Positions 1,223-7,802 of a stretch of DNA of 64,000 nucleotides are shown here, in pieces; the stretch's first letter is position 1; each line of letters opens with the position of its first letter. The notes beneath the pieces are model-generated. The model saw only the letters and a list, made by a program, of their open reading frames with translations. It was not told the DNA's origin and did not search any database. The DNA is taken from sequence record LR745208.1. One strand, 5' to 3'. The position numbers and the translations under genes were made by a program.

Positions 1223-1471
1223 TTACTTACGCCCCGACACCCCAGAGTTGGGCCACGAATGCACCAAGCAGACCTGTTCCCAGCCCTTGCTCCTTGGGGG
1301 AGGGGCGTCACATTCGATGCAGTAGGGTTTGACCCGGCGTGACTCCGGTGGCCTATTGATGACCATACGTGTGGTGTCACGCTCTTTGGTTGCGGTTAGG
1401 GCCCTAACCTCGGTGGCAGACTCCTGGAGCAAGTCATTCAGGTCGTACCAGTCCCAACGGTCTATCACCAT
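1223..1471 (-). CDS. Small hypothetical protein
   Basis: ATG lies just inside the end of the release-factor gene; CxxC motif. Confidence 0.55.
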   Translation of the reverse strand: MVIDRWDWYDLNDLLQESATEVRALTATKERDTTRMVINRPPESRRVKPYCIECDAPPPRSKGWEQVCLVHSWPNSGVSGRK

Positions 1472-2122
1472 TCACCCCGCATGTATGCCTTCAGGTTCCA
1501 TTTGGTACCAAGAATGTGATCCGTTACAACTCCGTCCTGCATCCTGACTGTCCTTCTCTTATCCGCTTTGGATCCCGCCCCAACCTGTTGCTTACGGTCG
1601 GCTGCCCGGGTTGACGTGGCCTGGGTGTTCGCAGCCTCCCAGAGGCGTGCCCGTAGTAGGGACAGGGCAGATGCCAAGTTCTGCTTCTGGCTACGCTCGG
1701 TCTGGCATCGAACCATGAGCCCTGTAGGCAAATGTCTTACTTGTACGGCGCTATCAGTAGTGTTGACTCCTTGTCCGCCACATCCGCTCGCTCTCGTAGC
1801 TGCCCATTCAATATCCTGGGGCCGAATCACGAGTTGGGTCTCGTTCGGAGGTTCAAGGGTTGCCACCGTAATTGTGCTACTGTGGATTCTCCCATTGCTG
1901 GTCCGCTGCACCCTGTGGCCACCTGCCTCATTGGCGAAGGCATCCTTGGCGCCCTTCCCTGATACCTCTATGATGCACAGCCCTGGGGATTGCTCAATGA
2001 TAGCAAGGTCAAAGACCCCTCCGCAGCCCCCGCTTGGTATAGATGCCGAGGTACACATTCACTAAGTCCTTGGCGTCTGAGCCACCTTCGGCCGCTCTGA
2101 TTTCAACAATGATGGTTTCCAT
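1465..2122 (-). CDS. Class I release factor-like protein (RF1-like, no domain 1, PxT loop deleted), made via a +1 programmed frameshift; about 218 aa
   Basis: ORF1 2122-2009 METIIVEIRAAEGGSDAKDL...RRGL* (SD AAGGA) matches the start of RF domain 2. The +1 frame continues DLAII...EAGGHRVQR...GGQGVNTTDSAV...HLPTG...ERSQ...VTDH. Confidence 0.9.
2008..2022 (-). promoter_or_regulatory. prfB-type +1 ribosomal frameshift signal
   Basis: Minus strand reads GGAGG GGT CTT TGA C: internal SD, 3-nt spacer, CUU-UGA-C shift site, as in RF2 genes. Confidence 0.85.
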
Positions 2123-2131
2123 GGTGTGTCC

Positions 2132-2650
2132 TTACTTTACCCGGGTTTCGATAGTCAGCTTACTGAGTTGTTGGCCCTCAGGGCACAAAGTACCCTTCTG
2201 GCATGCCTGACAGGCGTGGCAATGTTTGAGTAGTTCCTGTGCTGATTTGAGAACCTCTGTGGATCCCGTGAAGAGTTTGTCAAAGGTGGCTTGGGCCTCC
2301 TGGAAGAAGGTGGCTGACGTGATGTTTATGTGGTTGGAGAACTCCTGCCATTTCTTCGGGAATGCTTGGAGGGACTCCTGGTCAATGACCCATGAGGTTG
2401 TGGTTCGCTCGGTGTAGGTTGTGGTCCTATCCGTGATGTATTCTGTGGCTTGGGCCTCTGGTTCCTCTGGGGCTGGCTCTAGCTCCGGGAAGAGAAGCTG
2501 GGTACCACACCTTGGGCAGTTGGGATATTGGTATTGAAATGGGCTGTCAGGCCAATAATCCCCCCTGTCTGTCTTGTGCCCGAATACACGGCACCACCAA
2601 GGGATTCTCTTGGGGGGTTGGTGAGATGGGTCTCGGTAGGGGTGGTTCAC
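2132..2650 (-). CDS. Hypothetical protein (WCxxFGHK and CxxC motifs)
   Basis: Fits the minus-strand gene run; 9 nt before the RF start. Confidence 0.6.
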   Translation of the reverse strand: MNHPYRDPSHQPPKRIPWWCRVFGHKTDRGDYWPDSPFQYQYPNCPRCGTQLLFPELEPAPEEPEAQATEYITDRTTTYTERTTTSWVIDQESLQAFPKKWQEFSNHINITSATFFQEAQATFDKLFTGSTEVLKSAQELLKHCHACQACQKGTLCPEGQQLSKLTIETRVK

Positions 2651-3779: not shown

Positions 3780-4645
3780 CGGCGCCTCTCCAAAACCTCT
3801 ATACGACGTTCCAAGTCCTGTTCCCTTTTGGTGGCTTGTAGCCTCTGACGCAGAGAGGCAAATGCTTCTACTTCCAGCATGGCTTCCTCCTTGTCGGGGA
3901 AGGTGACGCTGGATCCAGCATCCCAGGTGCCCGTACGGCAACGCCAGAACCAGAATTCTCCTGAGCTATATACCTCCAGATTCAGGTCCTCATCCATGAT
4001 GGCTTGGTACCTCCGGTGCTCTGGAAAGCCATCGGAGGGTGGCCGGGAGACATCCTCCCATTCCAATGTTGTGGTTGGTTTAAGGTTCTCGTGCTCGAAT
4101 ATCTCTACAGGAACCTTTCCAAACAGGTTTGGCCTTCCCACATCCATGTCGAAGTTGTAGGGACGGTACTCTGCGTCCTCCTCCCCGTCATCATTAATCC
4201 GCACCTGCCACGGGTTAGTGTTTACGGAGGTCTGGTTGAAACAAGCCCCACGAAATGAAGTGTCCTGTGCCAGTTTTCGCAGAACACTGACAATACCTGG
4301 AATGGTGGCAGTGACCTTCCATTTCTCGCCCGTGTACTTGGATGTGGCTTGATGGTGGTGCTCCCAGAAGGTGTCCAGGGCCGCACACACTCGGGAGAGG
4401 TTCTCTCGCTTGATCCAGGTGCCATCCCTCGTGAAGTCCAGGGCGATGTGCTCCCACTCCTCCATTTGTCTGGCAGGGAGTTGGAAAAGTTCCTTGTAGC
4501 CATTCATCAGGTTGGCTTTGGGGGTGTGTTTCTGACTCAGGCATTCCCAGATATGCAGGGCTCCAGCACATGCATTGTGGACATCCCCATCATAGAAGCA
4601 TACCTCTCCATTGTGTCTAATGGCATAGATCTCAACGTGGCTCAT
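3776..4645 (-). CDS. Hypothetical protein
   Basis: 289 aa ORF; ATGA overlap with the upstream gene. Confidence 0.7.
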   Translation of the reverse strand: MSHVEIYAIRHNGEVCFYDGDVHNACAGALHIWECLSQKHTPKANLMNGYKELFQLPARQMEEWEHIALDFTRDGTWIKRENLSRVCAALDTFWEHHHQATSKYTGEKWKVTATIPGIVSVLRKLAQDTSFRGACFNQTSVNTNPWQVRINDDGEEDAEYRPYNFDMDVGRPNLFGKVPVEIFEHENLKPTTTLEWEDVSRPPSDGFPEHRRYQAIMDEDLNLEVYSSGEFWFWRCRTGTWDAGSSVTFPDKEEAMLEVEAFASLRQRLQATKREQDLERRIEVLERRR

Positions 4646-5583
4646 GGAACCACCTTGGCGGTTGCCATCAACTTTTCGTTGTCTTCCTTCAGGGAAGCTA
4701 GGTGCTGTTCACTGTGGGTGAGGGCAAGGCGCAATGCCTCTTCATCGGTAGCCCCCTCGCCCTTGACCCACTTCCCACATGGGTGGGTCAGCAACCAGAA
4801 TGTGTGGAATTCCCTTCTCGTGGTAGTCATTGTGGACAGCAACCGTCCATCCCTCAGCACGCAGGGCAGCAAGTCGAGTGCTGGCCGTGTCCCGGATGGG
4901 AAGGCTTCCGCGAACTTGTTGAAGGCGTCCTGCTCCCGGTCAGGCCCATCCACATGGGCCAGCATGTAGCTGTGGGCACATGTCCCCGACACGGGGATCC
5001 CATACAGGTACCCAGCATCCTCAAAGGAGGTGTTTTTGCACCCGGCAATGTAGGCGGCTCTGGAGGCATACTCGGCCGCAGCCGGGTCAATTCGACGGGC
5101 ACCAAACTCGGACACGGGAAGTCCCTGTGCGGCCAGGACTACACGGGCAGCTTTGCTGGCGACCTTGGTCTCGTGGTTGATCACACCGAGCATGAAGGTT
5201 TCGAGGATCTGTGCCTCCCCCAGGGAGGCCTCCACGCGCAGGATAGGCTCCCCCCCGAAGGCAATCTGCCCCTCCAGCATCGAGTCAACGTTCCCAGTGA
5301 ACCGGTAGTGGCGGAGGTAGCTGACCATCTCTGTGGTCATCACATCCTTGAGCCCAGGTGCCCCACACAGGTAGTCGATGTCCTGTTCATCGAACCCAAG
5401 ATGCCAGATGTAGTCAGAGATCCTGTCAATGCCCACTACCAGCATGAAGTTGCGGTGCTTGGGGAGCTTGCGTACGTAAAGCTCGAAGACTGCTCGCCTG
5501 TCCGCGATCCCCTCGCGCAAGTAGGCACCAAGCATGGCCAGTTCGTATCGGTCCGTCATCAACGCAGAATGCATGTTCAACAA
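4642..5583 (-). pseudogene. pncB: Nicotinate phosphoribosyltransferase, C-terminally truncated and fused to an unrelated gene
   Basis: LMTDRYELAM, AVFELYVRKLP, EAQILET, SEFGARR, AYIAG, GTCAHSY motifs; similarity stops at AFPSG (about aa 235), before the LVDTYD region. Confidence 0.8.
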
Positions 5584-7592: not shown

Positions 7593-7802
7593 CTACTTAC
7601 CCTTCTTGACAGGGCGTTCCACCACGGTCAGGGTAGCCTTGGTCTTGGCTTGGACCATTGCACAGTCCTTCTCCGCTGCACTGCGGATGTGGTACTGGTC
7701 TGCCTCATCAAGGTCTCGGACCCACTCAGAAGCAACCCCCTCATCGTCGCTGCACCACCACTCGGAACGGCCCCGGTCTTTGCGTTCAATCAGAAAACTC
7801 AT
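7593..7802 (-). CDS. Hypothetical protein
   Basis: Tight head-to-tail packing. Confidence 0.6.
   Translation of the reverse strand: MSFLIERKDRGRSEWWCSDDEGVASEWVRDLDEADQYHIRSAAEKDCAMVQAKTKATLTVVERPVKKGK

Follow-up and report, generated by a model that had tools for sequence, protein, structure and literature searches.

How a phage might obtain a single release factor (RF) from a gene that is divided by a stop codon and a change of reading frame is the question raised by the locus at positions 1465-2122, minus strand, of a 64,000-nucleotide stretch of DNA, referred to here as the window. The window corresponds to bases 62001-126000 of a 485-kb metagenomic assembly, LR745208.1, which is labelled 'uncultured phage' and has no annotation. 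The answer that we regard as very probable is that the locus is one gene, expressed through a programmed +1 frameshift, for a 37+181-residue, RF1-derived class-I factor that lacks the RF3-interacting domain 1 (hereafter the mini-RF) and that would top up or replace termination. The structure of the gene and the selection acting on its frameshift signal can be read directly, and from them we infer what the product might release and what role it might play in infection.

One release factor gene in two reading frames

The gene opens with a frame-0 open reading frame (ORF) of 37 codons plus TGA (2009..2122, minus strand), which starts at ATG 2122-2120 and encodes METIIVEIRAAEGGSDAKDLVNVYLGIYTKRGLRRGL; these residues form the initial strand and helix of RF domain 2, with EGGSD (2075-2089) as the helix-tip motif. 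A likely ribosome-binding site, AAGGA (2129..2133, minus strand), as judged by reading the sequence, lies 6 nucleotides (nt) 5' of this ATG and overlaps the TAA stop of an upstream ORF of 172 amino acids (aa). The frame-0 ORF ends in CTG CGG AGG GGT CTT TGA C. This end contains an internal Shine-Dalgarno (SD)-like GGAGG (2018..2022), a GGT spacer (2015-2017) that sets it 3 nt before CTT, a slippery CTTT (2011..2014) made up of the P-site Leu codon CTT (2012-2014) and the first T of the stop, and the premature stop TGA (2009-2011), which together with the following C (2008) forms a weak termination context (2008..2011). On the same strand, the +1 frame opens with GAC (2010-2008) and runs for 181 codons to a stop at 1467-1465 (1465..2010). 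It carries the remainder of RF domain 2, followed by domain 3 with GGQ and by domain 4, and contains the motifs EAGGHRVQR, GGQ and VNTTDSA. The catalytic GGQ, encoded by GGC GGA CAA at 1771..1779, is invariant among 32 and among 62 aligned relatives.

The two pieces, which were submitted separately to all tools unless natural uninterrupted relatives were used instead, fall in order on a single RF model. The 37-residue piece corresponds to positions 113-140 of the prfA model and 117-145 of the prfB model (Pfam/NCBIfam profiles), its PCRF, prfA and prfB matches being weak but colinear with those of the second piece. The 181-residue piece covers positions 166-338 of prfA (TIGR00019, 175 bits), matches Pfam RF-1 (9.5e-31) and the end of PCRF, and retrieves RF1 from the PDB at 1e-36. 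Since the pieces are colinear on one model, the frame change, a single extra base, must interrupt one domain. The gene is otherwise without disruptions, and GGAGGNNNCTTTGAC, its exact cassette, is present a single time in the window, against 0.00 occurrences predicted by shuffled sequences, and a single time in the whole 485-kb genome.

By sequence, we assign the product to RF1-like domains 2-4 without domain 1, and neither to PrfH nor to ArfB. Searches with HMMER against PDB proteins score it at 125-130 bits with RF1, 73-89 with RF2 and 40-45 with PrfH, of which only the GGQ domain aligns, and the 175 bits obtained with NCBIfam prfA fall short of its 423-bit cut-off because domain 1 is missing. 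A tblastn search of the whole phage genome with full-length RF1 returned this gene only, making it the sole RF homologue of the genome and leaving no RF domain 1 elsewhere in it. An AlphaFold model of P0011, a natural uninterrupted relative with a short codon-recognition loop (predicted local distance difference test, pLDDT, 88), superimposes on ribosome-bound RF1 over its whole length (template modelling score, TM, 0.90; root-mean-square deviation 2.6 Å), as compared with TM values of 0.82-0.85 for RF2 and 0.66 for PrfH. In a tree with 10 cellular RF1s, obtained by a quick search and with recombination evident, the family forms one clade (Shimodaira-Hasegawa-like approximate likelihood ratio test, SH-aLRT, 100). 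Domain 1 is the part of RF1 that contacts RF3; according to PMC1586002, which cites Mora 2003, neither codon recognition nor hydrolysis requires it, and RF1 remains active in vivo when truncated. The first-pass annotation of this DNA had described a phage gene with a 37-codon ORF from ATG 2122 ending in CGG AGG GGT CTT TGA C, continued in the +1 frame through the RF domains to an intact GGQ, and encoding an RF1-like backbone devoid of domain 1. The minus strand, the source record, the colinear Pfam/NCBIfam matches and the scores above bear out each of these points.

It is barely credible that this structure reflects an assembly or sequencing indel, a decayed pseudogene or transcriptional slippage on the T run. 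The suspicion arises naturally from a single extra T in a short homopolymer of an unannotated metagenomic assembly, but the pair of 37-aa and 197-aa ORFs recurs without change on 23 contigs, which derive from at least five samples and assemblers, and the aligned DNA of L161, L163 and L164 has an identical shift site. Two strain variants of the window phage (L162:1546-1552 and L165:1546-1552) carry TTT TGA C in place of the CTT TGA C of window positions 2009-2015, a substitution that is synonymous in the +1 frame and leaves the site slippery; prfB, too, has TTTTTGA as a rare variant (PMC12421855). Moreover, the same site is present in 77 diverged relatives, synonymous positions are under strong selection for the cassette, the gene has no other disruption, and a run of three T is far below the length of known transcriptional slippage tracts. 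The error and pseudogene readings of the locus are effectively refuted.

Conservation and variation of the cassette and the codon-recognition loop

A protein search yielded 314 short relatives (170-230 aa), and IMG/VR contains 284, mostly on contigs of 50-620 kb. We analysed 82 loci at the DNA level: the window, its nearest relative (L166), two contigs of metagenome-assembled genomes and 78 IMG/VR contigs, the IMG/VR loci coming from the best 80 of the 284 relatives. Seventy-seven of the 82, at 43-86% amino-acid identity, divide the protein in the same way: xIVEIRAAEGG is encoded in a first frame, which stops after CTT at one and the same codon, and the GGHRWQ...GGQ body in the +1 frame. All 77 frameshifted loci, and all 71 non-identical genes, have CTT as the last codon ahead of the stop, whereas CTT makes up 16% of the Leu codons elsewhere in these genes. 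The stop itself is TGA in 63, TAG in 12 and TAA in 2 of the 77. It is followed by C 57 times, by G 16 times, by A three times and by T once, and at this base, which is a synonymous site, codons ending in C exceed those ending in T by 53 to 1. The two preceding Arg codons are equally biased, with CGG in 51 of 61 cases (background 16.5%) and AGG in 39 of 42 (background 11%), a choice that produces GGAGG three bases before CTT. Perfect GGAGG at the same spacing is found in 37 of 71 unique relatives, and 13 more retain four of its five bases. Given that the proteins have diverged to 43-60% identity, synonymous sites should otherwise be free to vary, and the sequence comparison demonstrates purifying selection on the elements of the cassette at the nucleotide level. 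The earlier reading of a prfB-type +1 cassette (SD, 3-nt spacer, CTT-TGA-C) thus finds all its elements and their spacing in the window, and the conservation of GGAGG-N3-CTTTGAC among homologues extends to the CTT-stop of all 77 shifted loci and to a perfect GGAGG in 37 of 71.

Adding to the loci those gene calls whose out-of-frame N-termini reveal the site ('...GGVF-D/E/S/N') brings the collection to 128 distinct frameshifted genes, with TGA at 91 (71%), TAG at 32 (25%) and TAA at 5 (4%) of the sites. TGA and TAG have replaced each other at least three times between close relatives, despite differing by two bases. No association was detected between the identity of the stop and either the class of the stop-recognizing tripeptide (128 genes) or GC content.

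Some members do without the frameshift. Among protein calls there are 15 uninterrupted forms against 57 informative frameshifted ones, a higher uninterrupted share than among the DNA loci, and in the tree they are nested among frameshifted forms. At the equivalent codon, non-shifting members have CTC, CTG, CTC, TTA, CTA or TAT, and they lack GGAGG, in the same way that prfB genes without a frameshift also lose the SD-like tract and the slippery sequence (PMC12421855). Three members keep an in-frame stop at the shift codon with no change of frame: the sister phages L065 (CTA TGA CTG, ~3960) and L074 (TAT TAG ATG, ~3750), which are 72% identical and whose neighbouring orthologues have no in-frame stops, and L031 (CTC TGA CTG, ~3990). 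To judge from their sequences, these genes look like cases of programmed readthrough in place of frameshifting. In L079, which branches first in the tree, the whole cassette is instead contained in an eight-codon leader (ATG ACA AAC ACA AGG AGG TCT CTT TGA C, L079:3845-3871); the entire RF body comes next in the +1 frame and has no separate start codon. The feature common to all these arrangements is a premature stop that needs to be bypassed, which argues for the sensing of termination speed rather than for a frozen accident.

More distant mini-RF genes were observed in three low-GC huge phages (27-31% GC, 634-735 kb): L182 (LR745206.1), L183 (LR756501.1) and L184 (LR756504.1). They start near locus position 1390-1400, contain in-frame TGA at codons 39 and 52, 46 and 54, and 44, respectively, and end in TAA, a pattern as would be expected from the sequence if TGA were read as a sense codon (code 4). 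In L183 and L184, the Q of GGHRWQ is replaced by I or N. No cultured phage in INPHARED carries the family, the other matches there being either distant genes of huge phages or RF1/RF2 of bacteria in contaminated records.

The window protein departs from most of its family in the loop that reads the stop codon. Its HMMER alignment, RVQR-TSN-GRIHSS against RVQRVPVTESGGRIHTS of Thermotoga maritima RF1, contains a four-residue gap that removes the PxT tripeptide of the general RF1 loop RVQRVP(A/V)TE(S)xGRIHTS; the shortened loop, R-T-S-N-G, is encoded at 1891..1905 (minus strand), where alignment with L166 leaves a gap of 12 nt. The allele retains further decoding elements: the Q of HRVQR, the helix-tip GGxD and HSS, which stands where RF1 has HTS. 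The first-pass annotation had taken the gene to have lost its stop-codon loop. This stands for the PxT of the window allele but not for the family, given that a full-length loop, typically RIPPTEKRGRVHTS, is present in 74 of the 82 loci (~90%). Among the 128 genes the tripeptide is PxT in 75, PxN in 30, SxT in 8 and short in 8-9. The nearest relative (L166/P0002, 83% identical) has VPPTERSG together with an identical cassette. Loops shorter by exactly four residues nonetheless recur, with seven changes on the tree, at least five of them forced by well-supported branches. The comparison of window 1465-2122 with L166:4-670 is also mosaic, identity being 98% over nt 1-120, a stretch that runs through the shift site, 55-75% over nt 121-480, which hold the loop and the GGQ region, and ~85% thereafter. 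This suggests that mini-RF alleles have recombined, with a breakpoint at the cassette, and a mosaic gene implies that recombination may spread loop types. Judging from the residues lost, the deletion in the window allele probably alters or relaxes the reading of the second base of the stop codon.

Ser at the first tripeptide position (SPT or SPL) was noted in L014, L044, L051/L053, L056 and L067 and in P0003, P0005 and P0028. According to the tripeptide swaps of Ito et al. (2000), Ser at this position would reportedly permit G at the second codon base. These members show no clear link to the stop at their shift site.

Mechanism, function and genomic context

Following the prfB paradigm, a ribosome translating frame 0 would reach the site with CUU in the P site and UGA-C in the A site, while GGAGG, 3 nt upstream, would pair with the anti-SD of 16S ribosomal RNA. 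Slow termination at the weak UGA-C would cause a pause, during which peptidyl-tRNA-Leu could re-pair from CUU to UUU, so that GAC would be read next. The output of full-length protein should hence rise as decoding of the stop slows, whether by RF2 at the TGA of the window or by RF1 in relatives with TAG. As suggested by its fold and motifs, the product would bind the ribosomal A site in the manner of RF1 domains 2-4 and hydrolyse peptidyl-tRNA through its GGQ, with no coupling to RF3. Most likely, this gene of a large huge-phage family, often found in transfer RNA (tRNA) arrays, tops up or replaces the termination capacity of the host during infection. Candidate purposes are extra termination under heavy phage translation, autoregulation in TAG and TAA members, a response to the loss of RF2 and rescue by loop-less alleles.

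Around the mini-RF genes, tRNA or transfer-messenger RNA (tmRNA) genes lie within 8.5 kb in 31 of the 60 loci scanned, with a maximum of 32 tRNAs. The source genome has 36 tRNAs outside the window, including a tRNA-Leu(GAG), of a type able to decode CUU, and no tmRNA; no UGA suppressor was found among the 36. A 'ttta' tRNA proposed for this genome by ARAGORN proved by Infernal to be an ordinary Lys(UUU). The genetic code, judged by the stop usage of long ORFs (a crude ORF-coverage test being uninformative at this GC content), is standard in the window, where 58 long ORFs (82% coverage) end in TGA 24 times, TAG 18 times and TAA 16 times. All-against-all clustering of ORFs across the 82 loci revealed no conserved partner protein and, in particular, no RtcB-, ArfA- or SmpB-like partner conserved near the family. 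The commonest neighbours, each at 8-9 loci at best, are an unannotated ~200-aa protein, an HNH endonuclease and a NADAR domain; an RNA ligase was considered for the ~200-aa protein but lacked Pfam support.

Several RNA genes near or related to the family deserve mention in their own right. At L002:3106-3464 there is a tmRNA gene (tag ANDNATASPALLAA) ~450 nt 5' of the mini-RF start. Two diverged phages carry, ~2.5 kb 5' of the mini-RF, a tRNA-Leu-like gene (L003:1401-1478 and L005:2339-2413; Infernal score only 33.5 bits) whose anticodon loop, CUUAAGCA, has an extra base compared with CUAAGCA in L009, the loop of the homologous tRNA-Leu(AAG). Such enlargement of the anticodon loop is a typical trait of +1 frameshift-suppressor tRNAs, and the anticodon AAG reads CUU, the shift codon. 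In LR745208.1 itself, outside the window, a marginal tRNA at 7631-7701 (L168) has the ochre-suppressor-like anticodon UUA, with 29.5 bits against an Rfam threshold of 29.

A number of points weigh against the interpretation that we favour. Frameshifting is predicted here from comparative sequence, and both the pairing with the anti-SD and the response to RF levels are argued by analogy. The window has no tRNA in its 64 kb, and its gene does not lie in a tRNA array. An RF1-type factor combined with a TGA sensor makes no closed autoregulatory loop, and the mixture of TGA, TAG and TAA fits no single simple regulatory story across the members. Finally, the P-values for codon bias ignore shared ancestry, and the tree comes from a quick search with 10 outgroup RF1s.

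Other accounts of the gene share its frameshift and differ in what they would have it do. True autoregulation, with the mini factor terminating at the premature stop of its own mRNA as RF2 does in prfB, is a possibility that we regard as rather unlikely. It would be the obvious arrangement for members with TAG or TAA, which make up 37 of the 128 frameshifted genes and use codons proper to an RF1-type factor; TAG, which never occurs in prfB (8,164 genomes, PMC12421855), is what an RF1-type loop would be expected to look like, and the repeated switching between TGA and TAG in close relatives (at least three times) is in keeping with it. Yet 71% of the sites, that of the window included, are TGA, which a factor with P-x-T/N should not read, and tripeptide class is not associated with stop identity; TGA members could join in if their specificity were relaxed, as might be the case for SxT or loop-less forms. 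The first-pass annotation had favoured another model, in which a loop-less, codon-independent peptidyl-tRNA hydrolase is made essentially only when host RF2 collapses and thereby couples a stress sensor to ribosome rescue. The deletion of PxT in the window allele speaks for this, as do the recurrence of four-residue-shorter loops on at least five occasions, suggestive of a selected second functional state, a site stop that is the RF2 codon, and the proximity of the family to tRNAs and once to a tmRNA gene. It also has a precedent in PrfH, a domain-1-less RF without a normal tripeptide that can be a rescue factor (PDB 9mor/7sa4; PMC6514570). We nevertheless hold this model to be unlikely. The Q of HRVQR, HSS and the helix tip are retained, ~90% of members keep P-x-T/N, and the nearest relative combines a full VPPT loop with the same cassette, from which it follows that a loop-less factor was not what the cassette evolved to serve. 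The protein bears little similarity to PrfH (71 bits, where the cut-off is 167, and TM 0.66), and a conserved RtcB-, ArfA- or SmpB-like partner is missing from the neighbourhood. The claim that the protein is made only when RF2 falls is, in addition, overstated: prfB-type sites shift substantially at normal RF2, a graded response is to be expected by analogy with them, and a quarter of the family uses TAG, an RF1 codon. A broader version, which the sequences would allow and which we likewise doubt, pictures huge phages as carrying a self-contained sensor and effector of host termination capacity, a domain-1-less RF1 paralogue made in step with the speed at which stop codons are decoded, with a cassette independent of prfB at two positions, with readthrough variants and with loop-less alleles providing codon-independent release or rescue that is switched on when host RF2 is depleted or attacked.

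We consider distinctly improbable a takeover of termination or of the genetic code, whereby the phage would lower or bypass host RF2 and supply an RF1-type factor for UAA and UAG, leaving the TGA site to report the loss of RF2. RF1 genes are reported from phages that recode TGA, where they belong to a 'code change module' (bioRxiv 10.1101/2021.08.26.457843), and the mini-RF genes of L182-L184, in low-GC huge phages, combine one or two in-frame TGA with TAA ends. In the window phage, however, TGA is a normal stop, ending 24 of 58 long ORFs, none of the 36 tRNAs is a UGA suppressor, and the TAG sites of a quarter of the members do not fit. There is similarly little probability in a constitutive attenuator, a fixed-ratio device that would hold a potentially toxic RF at low levels without sensing anything. 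Overexpression of RFs does lower fitness (PMC12421855), the site stop varies freely in the family, and uninterrupted members indicate that the shift is dispensable in some phages; but a weak promoter or ribosome-binding site would be a cheaper route to the same result, and the retention of a premature stop where it is met by readthrough (L065, L074) or placed in a leader (L079) points to the stop as the selected element.

The 172-aa ORF upstream and an 82-aa ORF downstream match no family and are not RF domain 1. The ATG of the 82-aa ORF (1223-1471, minus strand) overlaps the mini-RF stop (ATGGTGA), an arrangement that suggests translational coupling to the mini-RF; the ORF is absent beside other mini-RFs. 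Further away, a 313-aa ORF (4645-5583, minus strand) contains only the N-terminal domain of nicotinate phosphoribosyltransferase (Pfam 2.4e-25), and its last ~100 residues are unlike the catalytic domain. It may be truncated or disrupted in frame, perhaps by one of the indels mentioned in the first-pass annotation.

Relation to known release factors and recoding signals

The CUU-UGA-C of prfB is the textbook bacterial +1 recoding signal and has hitherto been treated as unique to RF2. That the same cassette should have arisen independently in a viral gene of RF1 type makes it possible to ask why RFs attract such control and whether the signal senses RF1 besides RF2. The natural variants of the family amount to a ready-made mutational series in this regard, covering TGA, TAG and TAA, CTT and TTT, frameshift and readthrough, a position in domain 2 or in a leader, and full or short loops. 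The abilities on the ribosome of a minimal RF without domain 1, and of one without PxT, also become testable now. In practical terms, gene callers render this gene as a 37-aa ORF and a ~197-aa protein with the wrong N-terminus, and public sets are mis-annotated as a result.

Previous work had placed RFs in phages. RF1 and RF2 are listed among the translation genes of huge phages by Al-Shayeb et al. 2020 (PMC7162821), RFs in recoded phages are reported by Borges et al. 2021 (bioRxiv 10.1101/2021.08.26.457843), and RF diversity has been surveyed by Burroughs and Aravind (PMC6514570); LR745208.1 comes from the type of data set used in the first two. In the passages of these three sources that were searched, a truncated, frameshifted phage RF is not mentioned. 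PHROGs holds only a full-length RF1-like family, labelled as of unknown function. A 2025 survey of more than 12,000 genomes reports no programmed shift in prfA and no TAG at prfB sites (PMC12421855), and all +1 frameshifts with a CUU-stop motif in RECODE are prfB, according to PRFect (PMC10885494). No description of an RF1-type frameshift in phages was found in the searchable literature, which leaves out most subscription journals, and within these bounds the mini-RF family appears to be undescribed.

Among known proteins, the GGQ peptidyl-tRNA hydrolase domain is shared with ArfB, ICT1 and C12orf65. These lack the codon-recognition superdomain and rely on a C-terminal tail, which is basic in ArfB, whereas domains 2 and 4 of the mini-RF are complete; its score with the ArfB model NF006718 is 45 bits against a cut-off of 100. 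PrfH resembles the mini-RF more closely in its general design, being a class-I RF homologue of ~200 aa with GGQ and without domain 1 or a normal tripeptide (PMC1586002, PMC6514570). The mini-RF nevertheless scores 71 bits against the 166.65-bit cut-off of TIGR03072, aligns with PrfH from the PDB in the GGQ domain only, and has no RtcB neighbour, either in the window or among the conserved neighbours of the 82 loci. The best match in sequence and structure remains RF1 (prfA), with which it shares GGQ, the Q of HRVQR, domains 2 and 4 and, at the level of the family, a loop consensus, RIPPTEKRGRVHTS, that parallels the RVPATESQGRIHTS of RF1. It differs from RF1 in the missing domain 1, in a score below the equivalog cut-off, in a six-residue deletion in a domain-2 hairpin and, for the window allele, in the loss of PxT; prfA, moreover, is not known to use frameshifting (PMC12421855).

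It is in the mode of expression that the closest parallel, prfB, is to be found. Both have a short upstream ORF, an SD-like purine tract 3 nt before CTT, a slippery CTTT, a premature stop with C as the next base, a +1 frame that opens with GAC, and a rare TTTTTGA variant (PMC12421855). The phage gene, on the other hand, is an RF1-type paralogue whose site lies at about position 150 of the prfA and prfB models, inside domain 2, whereas that of Escherichia coli prfB is at codon 26, in domain 1 (PMC12421855), a non-homologous placement that the first-pass annotation had also recognized. The absence of TAG from prfB sites in 8,164 genomes has been attributed to the need for the stop to match the factor encoded (PMC12421855); in the phage family, TAG accounts for 25% of sites, a factor whose gene has TGA at the site probably does not recognize that stop, and readthrough and leader-ORF variants exist as well. 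A site in domain 2, rather than at codon 26 of prfB, marks an independent origin: the phage cassette would work like that of prfB but is not descended from it.

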